A DNA stretch of 64,000 nucleotides from Salpingoeca rosetta (Eukaryota; Protista; Choanoflagellata). Below, one piece after another: positions 38,272 to 50,580 of this stretch (position 1 is the stretch's first letter; every line of letters starts with the position of its first letter). The position numbers were made by a program, and so were the translations under genes. Under the pieces are notes generated by a model. That model searched no databases, was not told where the DNA came from, and worked only from the letters and a program-made list of their open reading frames with translations. The stretch lies in contig JAWQFM010000019.1 in NCBI GenBank assembly GCA_033442325.1, positions 598,087-662,086 of the forward strand, written 5' to 3'.

Positions 38272-41200
38272 CTACTCCTCATCGTCACTGTCGTTGGGGT
38301 GCGTCTCCATGGTTTGCGCTGCACGCACGGCCAAGTCTGTTGGGTCGCCCCTTCGGAGCAGCACGCACTTGTCAAACTTGAAGCCAATCGACTCGAAGCG
38401 CGACACGCTGGAGAGGAAGACGCCCATGCGGTTGTCGGCGTGCTTGGCCCACGCCTTGAGGCTGGACACAATGTCAAGCACAGCGAGCGCATCCATGCCA
38501 AGCATGCACTCGTCCAGCAGCAAGAAGTTGAGCTTGATGCCCAGGCTCTTCTTCAGCAGCTGGCACGACGCCAGCATCACCGCCAGGCGATAGCGCGCGT
38601 ACTCCGACGTGCTGAGCGAACTCACGCCACCGCTCAGCTCCTCGTCGTCCCACTTCAGCACGGGCTCGTGCAGCAGCCGCTCAAGCGCCGTCTCAAGCAT
38701 GATTGAGGAAACATCTTCTTCCCTGCTGTAGTTGCCGCTGCCGTTGCTGTTCTTTGCTGCTGCTGCGCTCGTGGTTACTGCGGCCGACGACCGTGTCACC
38801 GACGATGCTGTCGTTGACGATGCTGTCGTTGACGATGCTGTCGTTGACGATGTTGGTGCTCCATCGCCACAGTCGTCATCCCCATTATCATCATCATCGT
38901 CCTCGTCGTCGTCATCATCATCTTCACCCGTTCCACCATCATCACCTCTTGCACCACCGTCGTCGTCATCACTGCCAAAGTGGACGGTGAGCCGCTGGCA
39001 CCGGTACAGCGCCTGGGCCTTTGCATACTCCTTGGCCACGTCGGGGTCACTCTGCACTTGGAAAAACTTGTCCAGCCAGTACTGCACGTGACCCTTCACG
39101 CTCTCCACCAGCTTGCCTTGCACCAGCAGCTGGAACGCGTTGAGTCGTGCGTCGTCTGCCCTCGATGTCTCAATACTGCGACGCAGTTCCTGCTGTGTAC
39201 TCACCCACCTGCTCTTCTCCTCCTCCGCTGTCTGCATGTCACGCTGCAGTTGCTGCAGCTGTTCCTCTGCTGCGTTCAGCTTGCGCTGTTGCTCCTTGAG
39301 CTGTGGTCGCTTCTTCTCGAGCTCCTTCTGCGCGCGCTCGCTGAGCGCTTTCTGCTGCGCAATGCTGTTGCTCAGTTGTGTATGTTGTTGCCGTTTCTGC
39401 CGCAAGTTTTTGTTGACCTTAGTGAGCTGACCCTCCAGGGCCTTGATCTTCTCCGAGCAGCGTTCGATGGTGGTCTCGCACTCTCGCCTTCGCTCAGCGA
39501 AGACCTGAAGACAGTCGTCTCCGAGCGGTTGCAAGCACGTGGGGCACGTGGGCTGGTCCTTTAGCTTTCCACGCTTGCTGGTGAGGCTTGACTTCTCTCT
39601 CTTTGCAGCAGCTTGTTCGCCACGTTGCTCACGGATATCATCTTTACATGCGTCCTTGTCTTCCTCCAGCCGCTCAATCTCTGCTTCACAGGTCCGCAGC
39701 TTTGCCTCCAGATCTGCAGTTGCAGAGGAGAAGGGCAGCGCAAGGCGTGTGAATGCGGGAGGGGAGTGGCAGCTGGTGAGCAAGCTCGACAAGTTCACGC
39801 ACGTGCACAGATGTATGCACACACGTTCAAGCAACGTCTAGGTATGCGAACATTTGCAGTCACACACACACATTCGACACACTCACACACACACACACAC
39901 ACACATACAAATGCACACGCACACACATACACACACACACGCACGCACATACAGATGCACGCACACACGCACACACACACACACATACAAATGCACACGC
40001 ACGCACATACAAACACAAACACACACACACACCTGTTGTGCCGTGCTGGGCTGAACCTGCGGCTGAAGCCACCTCCCGTTCCAAGGCACGCACCTCCTTT
40101 TTCAGCTCCTCTACCCTGGTTCGAGCAGAGTCGCATGTCTCCTTCGCGTTCTCACAACATGTCTTGGCGTCTTTCAACTTCCTCACTGCAGTCTCCAGCT
40201 GGGCTGCGGCGTTCTTCTCCTCCTTGGCAGCTTCACGCAACTTGTTCTTGACATCTTCGGCTGCAGCATCAAACGCCTTCAAGTCGAGGACGGCAGCAAT
40301 GGCGCTGCGCGCGGGCTTCGCCCCAGCGGCGCTGGAGGCGCGGAAAAAAGCCGCGTCGCTGAACGGCGTCCAAGCACATATGAGGGGCAGCGCCCACTCA
40401 AGGTCCTCGCCACGCCGCAAATTGAACAGCTCACGTGCGATCGCGTCCGTCTTGTTGGATTTGTTGCCTTTGATGATGCGACCACCAATCTCCACTCTGA
40501 GCTGCTGTGGTTGCTGTCGCTGCTGTCGCTTCTGCCGCTGCTTCAGCTTGCGTGTCACCCTAAACTCTTGCCCATCCACCACGCCTTTCAAGCGGACGAA
40601 CGAGTCACCAGCGCTGTTGGGCCGCAGGTTCCCCATATTGCGGTCCTTGCTGTTGCTGATGTGTGGATCGGCCTTCCCTGTCAAGCACCAGATGATGGAG
40701 GTGGCGCACAGGAGCGTCTTGCCAAAGCCATTGCTCTGCAGGCCGCCAAGGTCCGCGCCAATGAAGCCCAGCCCCACGAAGCTCATGGAGAACGTTTGCT
40801 CGTCGAGGAACGGGCCAAACCCTTTCACGGTCAGGAACTCAAACTTGACCTCCTTTGGTGTGGCGGCTGTGCTGCTGCCGCGTGTTGACTGGCTATCGCC
40901 ATCCGGCGCCACCAGCTCATGGATTCTGTTCAGATCTTCAAGGGCCAAGCCAGAGGCTGTTGTACCGCCTGAGAGGGCAGTTGAGGCTGTGGCACTTGAG
41001 GAAGTTGAGGGTGCGGACGCTGAGGGAGGCGTGGAAGTGGTGAGGGCAGCAGAAGGTGCGGCTGCAGCTCTCGTCGCGTCTGAGGACGAAGGACGTAGAC
41101 GTGCGCGCTCGCTTTCCAAGATGTCGCGCGCTGTGGCGACGCCCAGCTGCTGCCCCAAGTTTGCGTTCTGGGGATCCCGAATAACCACGCGGATTCGAGT

Positions 41201-41821
41201 GTCCATCTCCCGGTAGAGCTTGTAGATGGCTGGGTTGTTGTCTGGTGTTGGTTTCTTCCCAAAGAAGAACAAGGTATCTGTTTTCTTGTTCTTGGCCACT
41301 TCGCGCACCTGCTTCCAGTCGACTTTTGTATGTGTTTCGTCGAGCAGAAAGCACCGCGACGTGCCTTCTCTCATGTGCTGCCATGTCGCTATGCTGTGGA
41401 GACGAACGGCAGGCAAGAAAGAAGGCAAGCGGTGCGCGAAAATGTGGGGTGGAGGATGTTAGTGGAGAAGAAGCGGAGGAGGAAATGAGCGGAGGACACA
41501 GGCATGACGCTATGACGCGCTTGCGTTTAAACAAAACGTCGCAGTGAGGAGCAACGAGGCAGCGGGGTGATATTGACTTACCCTGAATCCATGTCTTCAA
41601 TGACGGTCTTGAACATGGCGTCGCTTCCCATGGAGGACGGTGGGACTATGAAGAAGAGGAGAAGGTGTGTGTGTTTGTGTGTGTGTGTGTGAGTTTGTGT
41701 GTGTGTGTGTTTTTTGTGTACGTGGATATGCAAGAGCACGCGGAAGCAGTCAAATCGGTGTGAGACTTGGTGACAGGTGAGGGATGAGATTGGAGGGGGG
41801 TGGCAAACCGCATGCATGCAT

Positions 41822-41891
<70 letters not shown>

Positions 41892-42271
41892 GTTTTGGGA
41901 CGTTTGGAAGCGGGGTTGCCATTGTCACTCTTCATGAGCGCTTGGCGCTGCTGAATCAGCCTGCAAACGATGTGGTCTTGTCCCAGAGCACCAGTGACGC
42001 TCTGTCGCAGAGGCTCCAGGTCGCTCTCCTCGCATAAGTAGGGGAGATTGGCATTGGAGTTGGGTGGGCAACGCGTTTCAAGGAGGTGTATGCATTCATC
42101 TGTTGAGGCGTTTGTTTTCACCTCAACACCGCATCTGACAAGCAGAAGTTTCGCCTCCAAGTCAGTCAGCTGGTGCTGCAGCTCCTCGACGATATCGGCG
42201 TACAAGGACCCTGGTGTCACCGCTAACCCTTCATCCTTTGTTGCCCTTGCGCTTCGCTTTGCTGAGGACAT
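38272..42271 (-). CDS. SbcC/Rad50/phage gp46-like SMC-superfamily ATPase with zinc hook and N-terminal extension (~1074 aa, 4 exons)
   Basis: Exons 42271-41890, 41645-41582, 41393-40057 (alternative donor ~40033) and 39713-38272 splice in phase with GT-AG. Motifs: [12 protein letters not shown], Walker A SNGFGKT, coiled coil, zinc hook CPTC, coiled coil, signature-like LSTSE, Walker B FLLLDE and D-loop-like LGMD. Confidence 0.85.
38800..38852. repeat. 15-bp coding tandem repeat (GACGATGCTGTCGTT)x~3.5, encoding (TTASS)n in the SbcC-like gene
   Basis: Directly visible in the sequence. Confidence 0.85.
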
Positions 42272-42291
42272 CTCCCGCGCCTGCAGTCTCG

Positions 42292-42425
<134 letters not shown>

Positions 42426-42648: not shown

Positions 42649-45075
42649 ATGGCGTCGCTTGGGGTGCACGAGTGGGCGTGTGTGGCGCAGCAGCTGTTGG
42701 ACGAAGCCCGCCGCTGTACCAGCAGCATGGACAAGCGCAACGTCGTGCGCGCCCTGTTCAACCTCATGCTCACCTCACGCACCTTGTACCACGACCTGGC
42801 CTGGGCCCTGCCAAAGTGGTGCCTCGACGACACGCGCGTGTACAAGGACGTTTCAGCCACGCACTGGCTCGACACCTTCCAGGCTGCTCTTGCGCGCGCG
42901 CTTCCACACGCAGGCCTGCGTGCGGAGGGTATTGCTCAGCGTGACGAGGCAGCGACAACTGTGACAACGACGCAGTGTCAAACCTGTCAAACCAACGACG
43001 GCGACACCACATCATGTACTTGCAGCCGCACGCAGGGCGACGCGTTGAAGCGTTGCACCTCGAGCTCTGTGTGTGGCCGCAGCGATCGCCTCCAAGCTTG
43101 GTTGCAGCAGCGGTTTCTCGTGCACGCTTGGCTTGGCATGACGTGGGAGGCAACCTGCCCATTCCTCTGCGGTGCACGGCAGAGAAACCAGTTCACGCCA
43201 CGCTTCACCCGGGTATTCGCCAGCGTCGCTCGCATTCACTTCCGCAACGCACGCGAGCTGCGCCTGTGGGTGGCTGGCGGGGCTGCCGTACCATCGCCTG
43301 CTGGCGAGCATGCAACCCATGCAGCGGCGCTGCAGAGCTCGGAGCGCACGCGCCCGTGGCAGCATACCACGCCAGGCACATCGTTGCTGTTGCTGCCGGC
43401 GTGGTATTCACTGACCACTGACGATCTTGTGGAGGAGCTGGGCCTTTCACAACAGAATCCTGTTGGAGCAGCGTCAGCGCATTCAACCTTGCCTGCAGAC
43501 ACCACCCGAAACGTGCACGTAGACACTGCCACCACTGCGAGCAGTGCTGCTCCACCAGCCGCCACCGCCACGTCTGATGTCACCCCATCTCCCGATCCCC
43601 GAACGTCGCTTGTCGCGAAGAGGGCGCTGGAGGTGTTGCAGAGGTACAGGGCTGCTCTGGGCGAGAACACAACAGCAACCTGCGCACGCTTGACGATGAG
43701 GGCTCCAGACGACGTGCCACGCCTCTCCTTCCACGACAAGAACCTGAACACGCTACAGCTGACGACGGTCGGCGTCGTTGAGGACATCCACTTTGGTGGT
43801 GCGCCCATCAATGTGCTCGAGTGGACCGTGGCGGAGGCGCAAGCGTGGCTTCCCAGCAGTTTCCGCCACGTTCAAGAGGTCACGATCTCGTGCTTTGGCG
43901 AGTGCATGCTCAACGACGTGGCTGCACTAGAAAATGTGCCACATGTATACCTGCAGCACTTGCCGCGCTTGCAGGATGTGTCCCCGCTGAGAGGCGCGAA
44001 GAAGGTGGTCCTGGAGAGCGTCGGCGTGACGGATGTTGTCGCCTTGCGAGACGTGGAGGACATCACCATCGTCAACTGCGAGCACGTGCAGATGCGGGAT
44101 GTCACGCTCAACGCCAAGCGCGTGCAGCTCACCTTGCTACCGGTGCAAGGCCCAATCCGCCTTCCACATGCCACCGACGTGACCGTTTTCGCCTGCAACA
44201 ACCTGCAGCGTGTCGCGTTTGCAGAGGACATGCACCACCTGTCCCTGAACCGGTGTCGGCGGCTGTCTTTCACCCCGTCCTTCAAGCACGCTAAGCACGT
44301 GGAACTGGGCATTGTCTTTCCCGCAAGCATGCGCAGGGACCTGTACGAGCGTGTGGACCACCTTGTCCTGTTTCACGAGGCCGGCATCTTGCACCCAGCA
44401 CACGTGGACGAGTACAACCTCACGGTTGACATCCGCCACGTGTCCTGCGCGTCCGTCAGCGAGCCGCCGCCTGCGTGCGTCCGGCAGCTGGCACTCAACG
44501 TCGTTGGGACGCAGCCCTTTGATGTGCAGCACCTCGGCTGCGTGCCCGATCTCTGCATCCGTGGCCACCACGACGGCACGGATCTGCAGCACGCTGACGC
44601 CCTGCGTGGCCAGCGCGCCCTGCACCTCACGCGCTGCCGCTTGCCGTCAGGGCACGTGCTCACCGACCACAACATGCTGACCCTGCAGCGCTGCGAAGGG
44701 GAAGCGGTGTGTGTGGACAACATCCGGCACTCCCTGCACGTGCAATGCTCCGGCCTGCGCCTGGACCGCGTCAGCAACGTGCCCAGCATCTGGCTCTCCT
44801 CCATGTCGGCCGTGCACGTGAATGTGATGCAGAACGTGCACACGTGCCACCTCTGGCTGTGCCGCGTGCAGGACTTTGCGCCCTTTGCCACCGTGCAGCG
44901 CGTGCTCTTGGAGGAGTGCCGGTTTGACGAGGACGACGCTACCGGCACCATGCCCGACACCATGGCGTGCCTGCGCATCAACCGCTGCACGACCACAACC
45001 ACGCGGGCAAGCTGGCCAGACCTCACCCTCATCAACACACCCAAGAACCACATCCTCGCAGCGCTGCGTGGCTGA
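42649..45075 (+). CDS. Intronless leucine-rich-repeat protein (808 aa), possible degenerate F-box-like N-terminus
   Basis: An uninterrupted ORF with LRR-like units (LNDVAALENVPHVYLQHLPRLQDVSPLRGAKKVVLESVGVTDVVALRDVEDITIVNC; VQDFAPFATVQRVLLEEC). Confidence 0.8.
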   Translation: MASLGVHEWACVAQQLLDEARRCTSSMDKRNVVRALFNLMLTSRTLYHDLAWALPKWCLDDTRVYKDVSATHWLDTFQAALARALPHAGLRAEGIAQRDEAATTVTTTQCQTCQTNDGDTTSCTCSRTQGDALKRCTSSSVCGRSDRLQAWLQQRFLVHAWLGMTWEATCPFLCGARQRNQFTPRFTRVFASVARIHFRNARELRLWVAGGAAVPSPAGEHATHAAALQSSERTRPWQHTTPGTSLLLLPAWYSLTTDDLVEELGLSQQNPVGAASAHSTLPADTTRNVHVDTATTASSAAPPAATATSDVTPSPDPRTSLVAKRALEVLQRYRAALGENTTATCARLTMRAPDDVPRLSFHDKNLNTLQLTTVGVVEDIHFGGAPINVLEWTVAEAQAWLPSSFRHVQEVTISCFGECMLNDVAALENVPHVYLQHLPRLQDVSPLRGAKKVVLESVGVTDVVALRDVEDITIVNCEHVQMRDVTLNAKRVQLTLLPVQGPIRLPHATDVTVFACNNLQRVAFAEDMHHLSLNRCRRLSFTPSFKHAKHVELGIVFPASMRRDLYERVDHLVLFHEAGILHPAHVDEYNLTVDIRHVSCASVSEPPPACVRQLALNVVGTQPFDVQHLGCVPDLCIRGHHDGTDLQHADALRGQRALHLTRCRLPSGHVLTDHNMLTLQRCEGEAVCVDNIRHSLHVQCSGLRLDRVSNVPSIWLSSMSAVHVNVMQNVHTCHLWLCRVQDFAPFATVQRVLLEECRFDEDDATGTMPDTMACLRINRCTTTTTRASWPDLTLINTPKNHILAALRG

Positions 45076-45415: not shown

Positions 45416-48400
45416 TCACAGGAGAGCAGTGCGCAGCTCTTGAAAGGTTGGTCGGTGCGACGGAACTTGGCTCATGCACTCCAAGGACAACGCCCTGTAC
45501 CATTCAGGCGCCGCTGCGAGTCAAACATGACAATCAAACAAACACATATGAGGTCCTACCACATTCTGCATGTTCTCAGCGTTGTCATGAAACTTGCAAA
45601 TGTCATGACACTGTTGTCTGCACTCACCTAGCGCACTCGTCGTTTCTGACGGGGCCGGATACACGAGCCGTTTGCCATCATTCAGAAGGTCAAGAAGCTT
45701 CGTGAACATCGGCCCACGAAAACCTGGCACCTCCTGTGCAATCAGGTCAGGCACTTTCTGGTTTGCGATTTCCCACATGAGCACACCAAAGCTGAACACG
45801 TCAGCCTTTCGGCCATACACACTGCCAACGAGGACTTCTGGCGCCATATACAGTGGAGTGCCCACCCCAGCCGTCAGTGTGAGACCAAGTGTTTGTGCAC
45901 CCACGTGCTGTGAGTAGGCCATATCAGCCGGTGCCTCTGTGCGTGTTGTCTCTGCACTGAGCCGCTGACGAATGGTGCCAAAGTCCGAAATTTTGGCACG
46001 GAGCTTGCTCGACACAAGCACATTGCCGCTTTTCAGATCTCTGAAGGGCAGACAAACAACATGCACGCAGTTCATCATCAGCAGATTGATAACCAACCGA
46101 GAGGCCCCACCACAAAAGCGCAAAACACGCAATGCATGCAAGTTCACGTGTAAACACAGCCATGTGTACTCAAAGTCGCCAATGACGCTACAGCTCGACC
46201 GTTGCTGAAGGCACACCTGTGCATCTGATCAAGGCTATGGATGAATGCCATGCCACTTGCGATGTCATGGGCGAGGCGTCTCTTCAGCTCCCAGACCGAC
46301 GCCACATCGACGTCTTCTGCTGATGCCGATGATGTGGTCACGACAACCAGTTCGTGCTCTTCCTCCTCGTTCACCAGCGGGGCGGCTTCTGCAAAGTTGT
46401 CATCGCCACCCTCCTCAGACTGAGTCATTTGGTTGGCGTAGTCGGCCAGCAGTTCCTCGAAGTCGCGCTTCAACAAGTCCTTCAAGGAGCCCAGCGGAAC
46501 AAACTCAAGCACCATGAAGGGCGTGTTCTCTGGCGTTTGCCCCGCACCAAAGAAGCGAACCACGTGCTGGTGACGAGTTCGTTGGAGAAATTCGACTTCC
46601 TTTTCAAACTCAGCTTCCATCCCATCATCAAAGAAGTCAACACTCGGTTGCTTCAGCACCTTCACAGCAACGATGATGGAATCCCATTCAGCCTTAAACA
46701 CGACACCATAGGCACCGCTTGCCAGGCGTCGAATGAGGCGAACTTGATCAAATTTGATTTGCCACACAGAACGCAGTGCAATCACCTCTGCCTCTCGTTC
46801 ATCCAGCAGGGCTTGACCAAGATCGCGTTGGCTGCGCAAGTGACGCACACGCCTCCTATAACACAGTCGAGTGAGGTAAAAGATGCACACCGGCAATACG
46901 GCGAAGACAGAGCCCAGTGCAATCCCGAGCACAGGCGATTTCGTGCGGTGGCATTCACCCTTGCTGTGGTGAAACCCGCTTGCGCACGCACAAATGTGGC
47001 TAAAGATGACCTCTGTGGTTGGTAACTCTGCCTGGGAGCGCAAGGCACGCAAACTCTGCAGTTGCAGATTGCAGGCAATTGGAGCATTCTGCATTGCCAG
47101 AATGGGAATCGTGTCCCGAACTGGAATTTCATCGCCGCCAATCGTGGTCAACGCTGTGGAAGACACACCGAGTGTCTCCTGCGTGCCGACGCGAACTGCC
47201 ATCAAGCTACGCAGCTGCCGATTGCCGCTCAGGTCAATCACTGATGCCTGCTCCATGCAGCGACGCAGCATGTCTCTTATCACGAGATCGTCCCGAGCAA
47301 TGGTTCCACTGAGCAAACCTCGAGCGAAAAGGCGACTGCGGCCTTGGGTGGCACACATTTTATCAGAGAGCGGGATGCGTGTGCCGCTGATATCCAGTGT
47401 GTCCACTTTCTGAGCCACAAGTCTTGTCAGGCGCGGGCAGTATGATACATTCAAATACTCAACGTTCGAATCAATATCCACAGATAACATCTGCTCATTC
47501 AGCTCCAAGTGCACAGCTTCAAACGTTCTGCCTGCTGGAAGGGTGACATTGGTGAGGAGTGTTCTGGTGAGAAAGAACTCCTGCACGTTTGATGCCAGGG
47601 ACTCGACAATCGAGTGCAACAAATCACCATCTTCCATACGAGGCCACCCCATGCCAAACGATTGAAGGGTTGCAAGGAGGAATGGAGAAAGATCATCAAC
47701 TTCTAGATTACGCAAATCCAGCGTCGTGAGATGCTGAAAGTTTTCCTGAATCGCGACCTTTTCTTCTTCACTGTTGATGACAGGCGACACGAGCCGCGCT
47801 TGCGACTGTACACTGCCAGCTGCGATCTGCAAGGTCACAAGTTTGGGCTTGTTGACAAAATGTTCAAGACGAACCTCGTGCAGCTCGTGGCCATTAATAC
47901 TGAATGTTTCCACTTCGATAAGATGATGCACGCCCGACAAGTTGCGTATCGGATTGCCATTCATGTAGACAAATGTAAGTTTGCTCAATCGGGAGAGATC
48001 AAGCTGTGTGATGCGATTGTTGGGTGCATGCAGGCGTTTCAGCTCCGCTGCGCTGTGTAAGACCGTCAATGGAAGCATGGGCACATTGTTGTTGGCCAGA
48101 CTGAAGTGTTGAAGTTGTGGAGAGTCGGCCAGCAACGTTTGGGGCAACTGGCTGATTTGATTCTGGTCGAGGTTCAGAACTTGAAGTGCAATGAGGCCGT
48201 CAAAGGTTCCCGAAACAACGGCTGTCAGCGCATTTCCCTGAAGGAAGACTAATTCCAGTTGGGTTAAGCCTTGAAACGTGTTCCTGTGCAGTTGTTCCAG
48301 GAGGTTGTAAGCGAGGTGCAATGCTTTCAACGCGCTCAAGTTTGAAAAAATCTTTGGAGGCAGGGTGGTCAGTCGACAATGATCCAACTGCAACCGCTCC

Positions 48401-49905
48401 AAAACAGATGTGGCGGCGAACAAGTTTTCGGGAAAGGATGCAAGAGGTGTGCGTTGCAGGCTCAATACCTGCAACTGTGTCTGCTTGCTGAGTGTATCGT
48501 CAGGCAAGGTAACCAAAGGATTACCATCCAGCAGGAGTGTGTTCAGGTTGGTGAGGGGCGTCAGCAGTGTGCTTTGGATGCTGGTAAGCTGATTCTGGTC
48601 AAGTTCAAGCACCAGCAGTTGACCCAGAGGCCGAAACGCAGCTGCTTCAATGGAGGTTAGACCGCAGTTTGTCAGATCCAATGTCTTCATGTTTGGGGTT
48701 GCGCCAAATGAGCCCGCTGGCAGCGAAGACAGAGGATTGTCCTCAGCAACGAGCATCTCCAAATTTGGAAGGCGCTTGACGACATTACTCAAGTCCGTTA
48801 AAGCGTTGTCACTCACGTTCAAGGTGTGTAATTGGGCATATGTGCTATCTTCCTCGGGAGCCGTGAAACTGGTGAGCGCACCACGATACAGCGTCAACTC
48901 TGCAAGGGATGTCATGGTTGTAAAGATCAAATCGAGCGGAACCTCTTCCTGTGGAAGGCCTATGACCTCCATGGAATGTACACGATCCCAAATTGGCTGA
49001 TCAAGGAGGCACTGGAACTGAGACATGTCAACACCTTCGCGAATGAGAACGTGGACTGCGTAGTTTCGGATACGCTCGCAGAATTCACCATTCCGGCAGA
49101 ATTGGATGTTTTCATTTGTGCAGGCGGGTGGAAGCAACTGCTCTGGTGGAAAGGTCACTTTCAGCTGAAACTCAACTTGTGGTACATCACATGCAGAGAA
49201 AGCAAGATCTCCTAGTGTGCATTCCACCGTGGACAAACTGTCCATCTCTTCTCGCCGCCGACGATGGCGTGTGTGCAGACTTGGTGTGAGGAGATTATCG
49301 GAATGCCCTTGTGAGGGTGCGTGGGTCATAGTGTCACGATGTTGATATATGTCCTGATCCTCGAGATGAATCCTGCTGTCAGTTTTGTTTGTATCGGTCG
49401 TGTTGGGGAGTGTGACCAACTGGTGGGCGCCAACGTCGCGGTCATTCTGGTGAACCGTGTGTTCCTTCTCACCGCTGCGGTCCTCGAACGTGCTTTGAAA
49501 GACTTGCGATACATCTGTGCCTGGTGGGAGAGTAGAACAAAAGTGATGCAGTGCCGTTCGCAATACCCGAAGGTCATGCACGATGGTGGTTGTGTTGGTT
49601 GCGGGTTCATTCACCTGATGTGACAAAGCGTCTTGGGAGATCCTCGTCAATGAGGTCTTCGCCAGTGCACACAAAGACAAGTGTAGTTCGCAGCCAACGC
49701 GAAGACAAGTGCTTGTGCCTTTCTCTTCAGGTTCGCATAATGATCCTGTGAACAACAGGCTTTCGATGCTTTGATGTGTGTCCGGCGAAGCTGTTCTGTC
49801 ATCACTGCTTGTCAAGGACATTCCCTGGGTGAACTGACACGTCAGTAACCCTGACATCAGCCACAGCAAGAACAGCGGCGACGCTGTTCGCAGAAAGCGC
49901 ACCAT
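45416..49905 (-). CDS. LRR receptor-like kinase (TKL group): signal peptide, LRR ectodomain, Cys/EGF-like segment, TM helix, kinase
   Basis: Signal peptide MVRFLRTASPLFLLWLMSGLL; many LxxLxLxxNxL repeats; CACASGF..GEC; TM VLGIALGSVFAVLPVCIFYL; kinase motifs ASGAYGVV, VAVK, HRDLKSGN (across intron 46041-46216), DFG, GTPLYMAPE and DVFSFG. The last exon 45513-45416 (APEWYRALSLECMSQVPSHRPTF..stop) follows intron 45514-45627. Confidence 0.93.
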
Positions 49906-50580
49906 GGTATGGTGGTCACAGCAGAACTCTGGGAAAGGCTGGTGACAACTCGGGGCCTGTAGACGTTGGTTGTGGCTATGCGGTTGGTGTGGTTGGCCTC
50001 TGTGTTGTGTTTGGTGTGTTGTTGTAGTTGTTGTTTGTTGTAGTTGTTGTGTTGTGTTCTTCTTGGAGGAAATGGAGAATTTCGCCCTGAAAACAGGGAT
50101 CAAATCATTGCAGGTGCAACGTCGAAAATTAGCTACCGTCGTGTTGCACGCAGCTTCTTCGTTTCAGAACATTCCCCAGTTGTCCGGCCGGAAGGCCTTG
50201 TCAAAGGGAGTCACATCACCGAAACATGAAACCACCGTCGCACAACACAATCATCACCTCTCGTCCGCACCACGCTCACGTTCGCTGATGGATGGTCAGT
50301 ATGGGCTTGGTCGTCGTCACGTTTAACTTAAAACGCACGTTGGGTCGCCAGACAAAACCACTGTGAATCATCGCGGACGATGCGCAATGACGAGGAAGCA
50401 AGCAAGGAAGGAAGGAAGGGAGGGAAGGAAGGAAAGGAGGGGGAAGCAGCCAATTACGCAACCATCAGCTGCGAGACCGCCTGAACGTAGAGCACGATCA
50501 ACAGCGCTTCGAACACAGACACACGCACACATACACGAGAGCAGAAGGTGTGGTACATTCGTTGTGGGCGTACGCGCGTG

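Follow-up and report, generated by a model that had tools for sequence, protein, structure and literature searches.

The question raised by exon 1 of PTSG_07399, a gene of the choanoflagellate Salpingoeca rosetta, is whether a death-fold domain has become fused to an SbcC-like ATPase in a unicellular relative of the animals. Death-fold adaptors (DD, DED, CARD and PYD) are regarded as an innovation of animals. A survey of 21 choanoflagellates reported no Death or CARD domain (Richter et al. 2018, PMC6040629), and literature searches returned no paper on PTSG_07399 or on a death fold in choanoflagellates. The gene lies on the minus strand of a 64-kb stretch of contig JAWQFM010000019.1 (positions 598,087 to 662,086), which is referred to here as the window and in whose numbering the positions of the gene are given. 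It is very probable that exon 1 is real, that it encodes a member of a family of death-fold-like domains, termed DL here, and that the domain is fused to an SbcC-like ATPase. The best explanation, and on the whole a probable one, is that DL is a death-fold homotypic module which wires the ATPase to shared effectors.

A sequence-only reading of the exon had judged by eye that the spacing of its helices resembles that of a death effector domain (DED), and had put forward structure prediction and fold searches as a check on a six-helix death fold. Residues 20-117 were modelled with AlphaFold2 using an alignment of 10 DL sequences of approximately 100 residues each (alignment A1). The model has a mean predicted local distance difference test score (pLDDT) of 81.8, with blocks over residues 21-110 at 87-93 and those of the core at 90-93. 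Helices are assigned by DSSP to residues 20-34, 37-46, 57-66, 86-95 and 101-117. When the model is searched against the PDB with Foldseek, the DED of PEA-15 occupies ranks 1-2, with a probability of 0.99 and a template modelling (TM) score by target of 0.64.

The comparison was repeated independently of Foldseek with VIA-align over 48,161 PDB representatives. DEDs take all of ranks 1-9, with Z scores of 8.8-7.2 and a root-mean-square deviation of 2.6-2.9 Å over 79-85 residues, except at ranks 5 and 7. PEA-15 reaches Z 8.8 (2.6 Å, 85 of 90 residues), followed by the caspase-8 DED (8.6 and 8.4), the viral FLIP MC159 (8.4) and the DED of FADD (7.2). After the DEDs come death domains (FADD, RIPK1, NF-kB p105), pyrin domains (AIM2, NLRP6) and CARDs (CED-4, Apaf-1). 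Death folds fill each of the first 25 rows, aligning 79-87 residues at 2.6-3.9 Å, and 38 of the 50 rows shown. By our own estimate, this superfamily accounts for less than one percent of the library. Re-scoring of the Foldseek candidates gave the DEDs Z scores of 8.7-8.2, while unrelated chains fell to approximately Z 3. By all three approaches, DEDs are the nearest structural neighbours of the predicted model. The death-fold call does not rest on the Z scores as such; it rests on a single superfamily filling the top of the list and being aligned end to end. DL is thus predicted to belong to the death-fold superfamily, and to be closest in shape to the DEDs. A shape search of the ESM Atlas returned only TPR-like rows at TM below 0.5 and was uninformative.

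The sequence family to which the exon belongs was defined by an exhaustive phmmer search of 1.84 billion protein cluster representatives at E <= 1e-3. The exon 1 domain retrieves eight proteins at this threshold, seven of them from S. rosetta, and DL was not found outside S. rosetta in this search. Since paralogous copies are recovered at E 3e-8 to 3e-4, the exon 1 sequence represents more than a chance run of codons. One of the proteins retrieved (P0006, E 5e-5), which comes from a retroelement and contains a repeated stretch, is not matched by the family profile and was discarded as spurious. In total, 12 copies were counted in nine S. rosetta genes. The carriers are four Roc-COR proteins (two with TIR), one NACHT-type STAND nucleoside triphosphatase (NTPase), the SbcC-like ATPase and three PNP-nucleosidase genes. 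The earlier suggestion of searching the proteome for partners with the same domain was therefore productive, DL being present on Roc-COR, NACHT-type, TIR and PNP-nucleosidase proteins. Apart from PTSG_07399, the annotated carriers are as follows, with domains named from Pfam.

PTSG_05954 (P0002): leucine-rich repeats (LRR), Roc-COR, and DL at the C-terminus.
PTSG_06832 (P0004): Roc-COR, with DL at the C-terminus.
PTSG_09165 (P0008): Roc-COR and TIR_2, with DL at the C-terminus.
PTSG_12916 (P0003): DL, followed by an NPHP3_N (NACHT-type) NTPase.
PTSG_05953 (P0005): two DL copies, followed by a PNP_UDP_1-like domain.
PTSG_02681 (P0007): Roc-COR, a TIR-homologous region, three DL copies and PNP_UDP_1.

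The TIR-homologous region of PTSG_02681 aligns with the TIR region of PTSG_09165 at E 3e-24. The Pfam TIR_2 match among the partner domains scores 28.3 bits when the region is searched in isolation. The signature of alignment A1 reads L..I...L..L...E...LA..CG ... CPP....PYLS..SDL.PL...V...LG..H...LI..WQ, and its second half may also be written as CPP...PYL..(D/E)SDL.PL...LG..H. The near-invariant positions L35, L64, P69, L88, L96 and G97 are all kept in PTSG_07399. Within the window, the family profile finds no second copy of DL. Word-index protein searches (with the whole protein, with the alignment against proteins of 70-222 amino acids, and with the C-terminal copy of PTSG_05954) returned the query or nothing; they missed known paralogues, so no weight is placed on absence from them. 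Each DL copy has its own exon in the N-terminal and tandem cases. Exon shuffling with a common intron phase was considered and rejected: the DL exons end in phase 1 in PTSG_07399, phase 0 in PTSG_12916 and phase 2 in PTSG_05953, and these differing phases leave no simple exon-shuffling signature.

A number of observations weigh against placing DL among the death folds. Even at E <= 10, no match to the Pfam families DED, Death, CARD or PYRIN is obtained with any of the 10 aligned copies, and the family profile finds no death-fold chain among the PDB sequences. The top Foldseek E-value is 0.15, which is not significant, and the note accompanying the aligner states that a Z below approximately 8-13 can be reached by a generic arrangement of helices. 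The model has five DSSP helices and not six, as the canonical helix 3 (residues 47-56) is a loop. In DEDs, the last helix starts with an RxDL motif that forms part of a charge triad. In most copies of A1, LGxxH(I/L) stands in its place, with the near-invariant G97 at the position of the Arg, an equivalence that was set by helix boundaries and not by a residue-level structural alignment. Helix 3 also takes the form of a loop in some pyrin domains.

Exon 1 matches nothing in Pfam, NCBIfam or PADLOC, and the connection between helices 4 and 5 of the model (residues 67-85, CPP...PYL..SDL.P) is unusually long. DL is filed as a new family and not as a Pfam DED because there is no Pfam match and RxDL is absent. 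As modelled, it is a new family with a death fold that is DED-like in shape and is not a DED. The comparison made by eye is upheld in that the nearest solved neighbours of the model are DEDs; it does not extend to membership of the DED family. Similarly, the anticipated death fold was recovered, with the description "six-helix" applying only loosely.

The alternative that survives best draws on the same observations. It states that DL is a private helical bundle of S. rosetta that has converged on the shape of a death fold, without shared ancestry with DED, DD, CARD or PYD. In favour of convergence are the failure of sequence and profile searches to link DL to any death-fold family, the missing RxDL and helix 3, a Z of 8-9 that lies within the chance range for helical bundles according to the aligner's note, and the confinement of DL to one species. 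Such a bundle may still serve the S. rosetta sensors and effectors as a homotypic adaptor. Convergence does not readily account for the first 25 places out of 48,161 going to death folds alone, with the whole domain covered at approximately 2.6 Å, nor for the drop to approximately Z 3 for unrelated chains. The partners also argue against it, as Roc-COR, NACHT-type, TIR and PNPase domains accompany death-like adaptors in animals and bacteria (PMC8195603). Convergence is accordingly regarded as unlikely.

It has also been considered that DL could serve a nuclear DNA-repair ATPase as an N-terminal helical module for DNA binding or regulation (HeH/SAP-like or helix-turn-helix-like), with the other copies serving a shared binding of nucleic acids or partners. 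The KRPK patch that follows DL and the role of SbcC and Rad50 relatives as DNA-repair enzymes are consistent with this, and several searches lean the same way. The nearest clusters in an Atlas feature search are HeH and SAP (scores 0.76-0.82), a rice SAP domain stands at Foldseek rank 19, and the DL profile matches a homeodomain at E 0.77. All of these matches lie under the noise of the tools, with shuffled proteins reaching 0.8 in the Atlas search a third of the time, and the SAP domain scores Z 3.8 against 8.7 for a DED. The HeH/SAP lead was rejected on these grounds. A DNA-binding module also leaves unexplained the tandem copies that precede a nucleosidase and the C-terminal copies on Roc-COR-TIR proteins. 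This makes the DNA-binding alternative improbable.

The stretch 42271..41890 on the minus strand is exon 1 of PTSG_07399 (XP_004990899.1, P0001), a protein of 1,082 amino acids that is named "Rad50/SbcC-type AAA domain-containing protein" in UniRef and listed as a hypothetical protein in the protein collection. The features of the gene are given below, from the 5' end of the gene onwards.

42271..41890, minus strand: exon 1 (41890..42271), 382 nucleotides, starting with the ATG at 42271 and followed, past 41890, by a GT donor; amino acids 1-127 and the first base of codon 128.
41921..42214, minus strand: the predicted DL domain (death-fold, DED-like), amino acids 20-117, from the AlphaFold2 model, the fold searches and alignment A1.
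41894..41905, minus strand: KRPK basic patch, amino acids 123-126, read from the sequence.
41646..41889, minus strand: intron 1, 244 nucleotides, GT..AG; it opens with a (GT)n run, which is (CA)n on the plus strand, and is absent from the X4 contig described below.
41582..41645, minus strand: exon 2, 64 nucleotides.
41394..41581, minus strand: intron 2, 188 nucleotides, GTAAGT..CAG; the joint of 41393 to 41582 is listed for the X4 contig.
40033..41393, minus strand: exon 3, with the middle alpha/beta region, the linker, the first (N-terminal) half of the ATPase head and the beginning of the coiled coil.
39714..40032, minus strand: intron 3, 319 nucleotides, GT..AG and GT-rich; from the gene model only, the junction having no read cover.
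38272..39713, minus strand: exon 4, with the coiled coil bearing CPTC, a low-complexity insert and the C-terminal half of the head; the stop codon is at 38272.

Translation of this four-exon model reproduces the database protein letter for letter. All introns are of the GT..AG type and all exon joints are in phase. Long (CA)n/(GT)n microsatellites are located at 41807-41889, 42290-42424 and 39880-40030, in the introns and the 5' flank, and abut the donor of exon 1.

Four transcript datasets were mapped on 40100-42285, one consisting of contigs (X4) and three of raw RNA-seq (X17-X19). A single X4 contig of 2,743 nucleotides spans 42285..41900, 41647..41582 and 41393..40100 with consecutive record positions and with both introns removed. 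As it is without introns, this contig can only derive from spliced RNA. The joint between exons 1 and 2, which touches a (CA)n repeat, is not listed; the eight unplaced letters and an ambiguous "AG" fit a joint of 41890 to 41645 exactly. Exon 1 is therefore spliced with the ATPase exons, and the objection that it belongs to a different transcript does not hold. The sequence-only reading had placed an exon with these helical stretches and an SKRPK motif at 41890-42271, and the exon of 127 amino acids is found there. It had also stated that the exon splices in phase to the ATPase exons; the phase and the shared transcript are as described, and the splice is not direct, as the 64-nucleotide exon 2 intervenes.

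It could still be argued that exon 1 is part of another transcript or an annotation artefact, with the ATPase starting downstream. The raw RNA-seq reads are thin (two to three per run) and all lie in exon 3, and exon 1 is bordered on both sides by long dinucleotide repeats. With one intron-free contig joining exons 1, 2 and 3, with in-phase GT..AG junctions that reproduce the database protein exactly, and with conserved paralogues of DL, this is very improbable. Weakest of all is the notion that exon 1 encodes an L7Ae/Gadd45-like alpha/beta domain, suggested by a single-sequence phmmer match to an archaeal L7Ae in the PDB (E 0.03, residues 27-86 including LPYLCEE); its probability is negligible and it was rejected, as the confident model is all-helical, the match vanishes with the family profile, and no fold search returned an L7Ae fold.

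The remainder of PTSG_07399 is, as judged from its motifs and alignments, an SbcC/Rad50-like zinc-hook ABC ATPase. DL is followed by the KRPK patch, an alpha/beta region of approximately 115 residues, a linker rich in Ser, Thr and Ala (residues ~253-333) and the ATPase itself. KRPK, within ASKRPKT in exon 1, fits the minimal K-K/R-x-K/R pattern of a nuclear localisation signal and may be one. The middle region (residues 137-252; 41084-41619, minus strand) starts in exon 2 and has the predicted order H-E-H-E-H-E-H-H. Residues 128-262 have no relatives in Pfam, the PDB or the Atlas, and a single-sequence AlphaFold2 model (pLDDT 48.9) was not good enough to be used in fold searching.

The earlier proposal that the ATPase is SbcC-like is borne out by phrog_77 ("SbcC-like subunit of palindrome specific endonuclease"), which matches the protein at E 4.8e-26. 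The match is co-linear over the N-terminal head (residues 331-439), the hook region (residues 531-770) and the C-terminal head (residues 966-1026), at 2e-8, 8e-11 and 3e-5 respectively. Walker A is located at residues 369-375 (40735..40715), with GFGKT at residues 371-375. The LSGG signature lies at residues 962-965 (38637..38626). Walker B (LLLDE, 38523..38509) is continued by the D-loop as LLLDE...D at residues 1000-1008, in an ABC-type alignment of the C-lobe. The motif CPTC at residues 659-662 (39546..39535) falls inside the middle match of phrog_77 and is a putative zinc hook. An acidic, Ser/Thr-containing low-complexity insert occupies residues ~846-950 in exon 4. Pfam AAA_23 gives E 4.8e-4 and 21.2 bits, below its cut-off of 27. 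PADLOC profiles of LmuB match at E 8.6e-9 to 0.09 over coiled-coil stretches only, and the LmuB, DndD and PbeC profiles together fall for the most part on coiled coil of the protein.

The arrangement of the other DL genes bears on what the domain could do. PTSG_05954 (LRR-Roc-COR-DL, minus strand) lies next to PTSG_05953 (DL-DL-PNP, plus strand); the two are transcribed divergently, approximately 500 bp apart (L001:4150-12262), an arrangement that suggests a shared promoter region. Five paralogue loci were scanned with the DL family profile. This yielded the twelfth copy (L005 9107..8802, minus strand), which opens a gene lying head-to-head with PTSG_06832. The PNP_UDP part of this gene (L005:1017-2006, minus strand) is situated approximately 7 kb further on and is 49% identical to residues 262-582 of PTSG_05953. 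The two parts are split by a Ty3-type retroelement of approximately 6 kb, and the public gene model (1,431 amino acids) merges the DL exon with the retroelement polyprotein.

A third pair may be concealed in PTSG_02681. This model of 1,593 amino acids probably represents two tandem genes fused by annotation, one encoding Roc-COR-TIR-DL and the other DL-DL-PNP. It is read in this way because, at L003:13094-13921, the frame of copy 1 meets a stop 24 codons past the annotated donor, while the open frame of copy 2 has a Met followed by the normal first helix of the domain, which the annotated splice removes. On this split reading there would probably be three pairs in which a ROCO-DL gene stands beside a DL-(DL)-PNP gene, each effector gene adjoining a Roc-COR sensor gene. 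Three other DL sensors are "solo", namely the Roc-COR-TIR protein, the NACHT-type protein and the SbcC-like ATPase PTSG_07399.

Around PTSG_07399 itself, an uninterrupted open reading frame (ORF) of 808 amino acids (42649-45075, plus strand) lies head-to-head with exon 1, the two ATGs being approximately 380 bp apart. No Pfam family matches this ORF at E <= 0.1, and it is without a DL domain. A further ORF of 1,319 amino acids (46144-50103, minus strand) resembles by eye the receptor kinases of choanoflagellates, with apparent leucine-rich repeats, a transmembrane segment and the beginning of a protein kinase domain. No SbcD/Mre11 nuclease was noticed beside PTSG_07399 in the window, and no genome search for one was made.

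The most likely mechanism is one proposed by analogy. DL would act as a homotypic interaction module, as has been described for death-fold domains and the bacterial effector-associated adaptor domains (EADs). A hook-linked dimer of the ATPase would engage its ligand, which could be DNA ends or hairpins by analogy with SbcC, Rad50 and LmuB. The ATP-bound heads would then close, and this would bring the two N-terminal DL domains together. The paired domains would nucleate the recruitment of DL-bearing effectors, such as the DL-DL-PNP nucleosidase PTSG_05953. Homotypic binding, DNA sensing and effector recruitment are steps that we infer from these analogies and from human Rad50-CARD9. The distribution of DL fits an adaptor role, with Roc-COR, NACHT-type and SbcC-like proteins as the sensors and PNP_UDP effectors in neighbouring genes. 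For PTSG_07399 in particular, the route from adaptor to effector is put forward tentatively, with slightly more doubt than confidence.

Several points count against this proposal. No DL-bearing effector adjoins PTSG_07399 in the 64-kb window, and expression of the gene is very low in the three RNA-seq runs. Homotypic binding, DNA binding and effector activity are all properties that we infer. In addition, the column of the H-loop His is occupied by the Val/Ser of VFLSSVS (residues ~1020-1035; 38400-38470, minus strand) in a single weak alignment (E 0.009). As the H-loop His appears to be replaced, the ATPase may bind ATP and hydrolyze it poorly or slowly.

A family with a predicted DED-like fold that is invisible to Pfam, in the closest unicellular relatives of animals, bears on the view that death-fold adaptors belong to animals only. 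DL would connect NTPases of the Roc-COR, NACHT and SbcC-like types with effectors of the nucleosidase and TIR classes. The adaptor logic behind apoptosis and innate immunity in animals would then either predate animals or have been assembled in parallel. The ATPase member adds a possible sensor of nucleic acids to the DL network, in parallel with Lamassu and with Rad50-CARD9. In its fullest form, which is unlikely as it stands, the proposal is that of a pre-animal death-fold network in S. rosetta, in which the ATPase would sense a DNA end or hairpin, polymerise DL and recruit DL-DL-PNP effectors and possibly ROCO-TIR proteins. If this were true, the network would represent a counterpart of Lamassu in a eukaryote and, with its fusion in cis, a forerunner of signalling by Rad50-CARD9, and death-fold wiring would either predate animals or have arisen independently in the group that is sister to them. 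S. rosetta is amenable to genetic manipulation.

Among the known systems, the DEDs (PEA-15, caspase-8/cFLIP DED2, FADD and the viral FLIP MC159) offer the closest structural comparison, at Z 8.8-7.2 and approximately 2.6 Å over 80-85 of about 90 residues. Like DL, they occur both singly and in tandem. DL differs in having no Pfam DED match, LGxxH in place of RxDL, a loop in place of helix 3 and a long conserved loop between helices 4 and 5, and no caspase partner was seen among its carriers. In terms of position, the comparison is with DAPK1, in which a death domain lies C-terminal to Roc-COR, and with the animal NLRs, in which an N-terminal death-fold domain precedes NACHT. DL takes the same positions, after Roc-COR in PTSG_05954, PTSG_06832 and PTSG_09165 and before the NPHP3_N/NACHT-type domain in PTSG_12916. 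The effectors of the DL proteins are a PNP_UDP nucleosidase and TIR, however, and not kinases or caspases.

These effectors have bacterial parallels. In the work of Kaur et al. (2020/2021, PMC8195603), an "EAD principle" is described whereby homotypic adaptors are common to the sensors and effectors of bacterial NTPase-centred conflict systems, with PNPase and TIR as typical effectors. The bacterial death-like domains and EADs covered there are small helical adaptors that the gene of a sensor NTPase shares with the effector gene next to it, as is the case for the ROCO-DL/DL-PNP pairs of S. rosetta. In contrast, the S. rosetta genes are eukaryotic and contain introns, phmmer found no sequence similarity between DL and the bacterial families, and an SbcC-like ATPase is not among the cores named in the available part of PMC8195603.

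For the ATPase, a parallel is provided by Lamassu. LmuB, an SMC-like protein, is reported to recognise DNA ends and to switch on its effector through oligomerisation (PMC12663957). It is a short zinc-hook coiled-coil ABC ATPase in which ATP hydrolysis is probably impaired (PMC10586767; PMC12663957). PTSG_07399 likewise has a CxxC hook and appears to be without the H-loop His. The LmuB profiles match it weakly (best E 8.6e-9) and in the coiled coil only, and phrog_77 fits better. Equivalents of LmuA and LmuC were not found, and partners of the operon type are inapplicable to a eukaryote; coupling to an effector would instead run via the fused domain with its predicted death fold.

This coupling is reminiscent of cytosolic DNA sensing by human Rad50-CARD9, in which the Rad50 zinc-hook ATPase works with a CARD adaptor (Roth et al. 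2014, cited as reference 97 of PMC10586767). According to that citation, the human system pairs a zinc-hook ATPase of the Rad50 family with a death-fold adaptor in innate immune signalling; a comparable pairing would exist in PTSG_07399 if the modelled fold of DL is correct. The human adaptor is a separate protein that acts in trans with a bona fide Rad50, whereas in S. rosetta the candidate adaptor is joined in cis, within one polypeptide, with an SbcC-like paralogue that has diverged.

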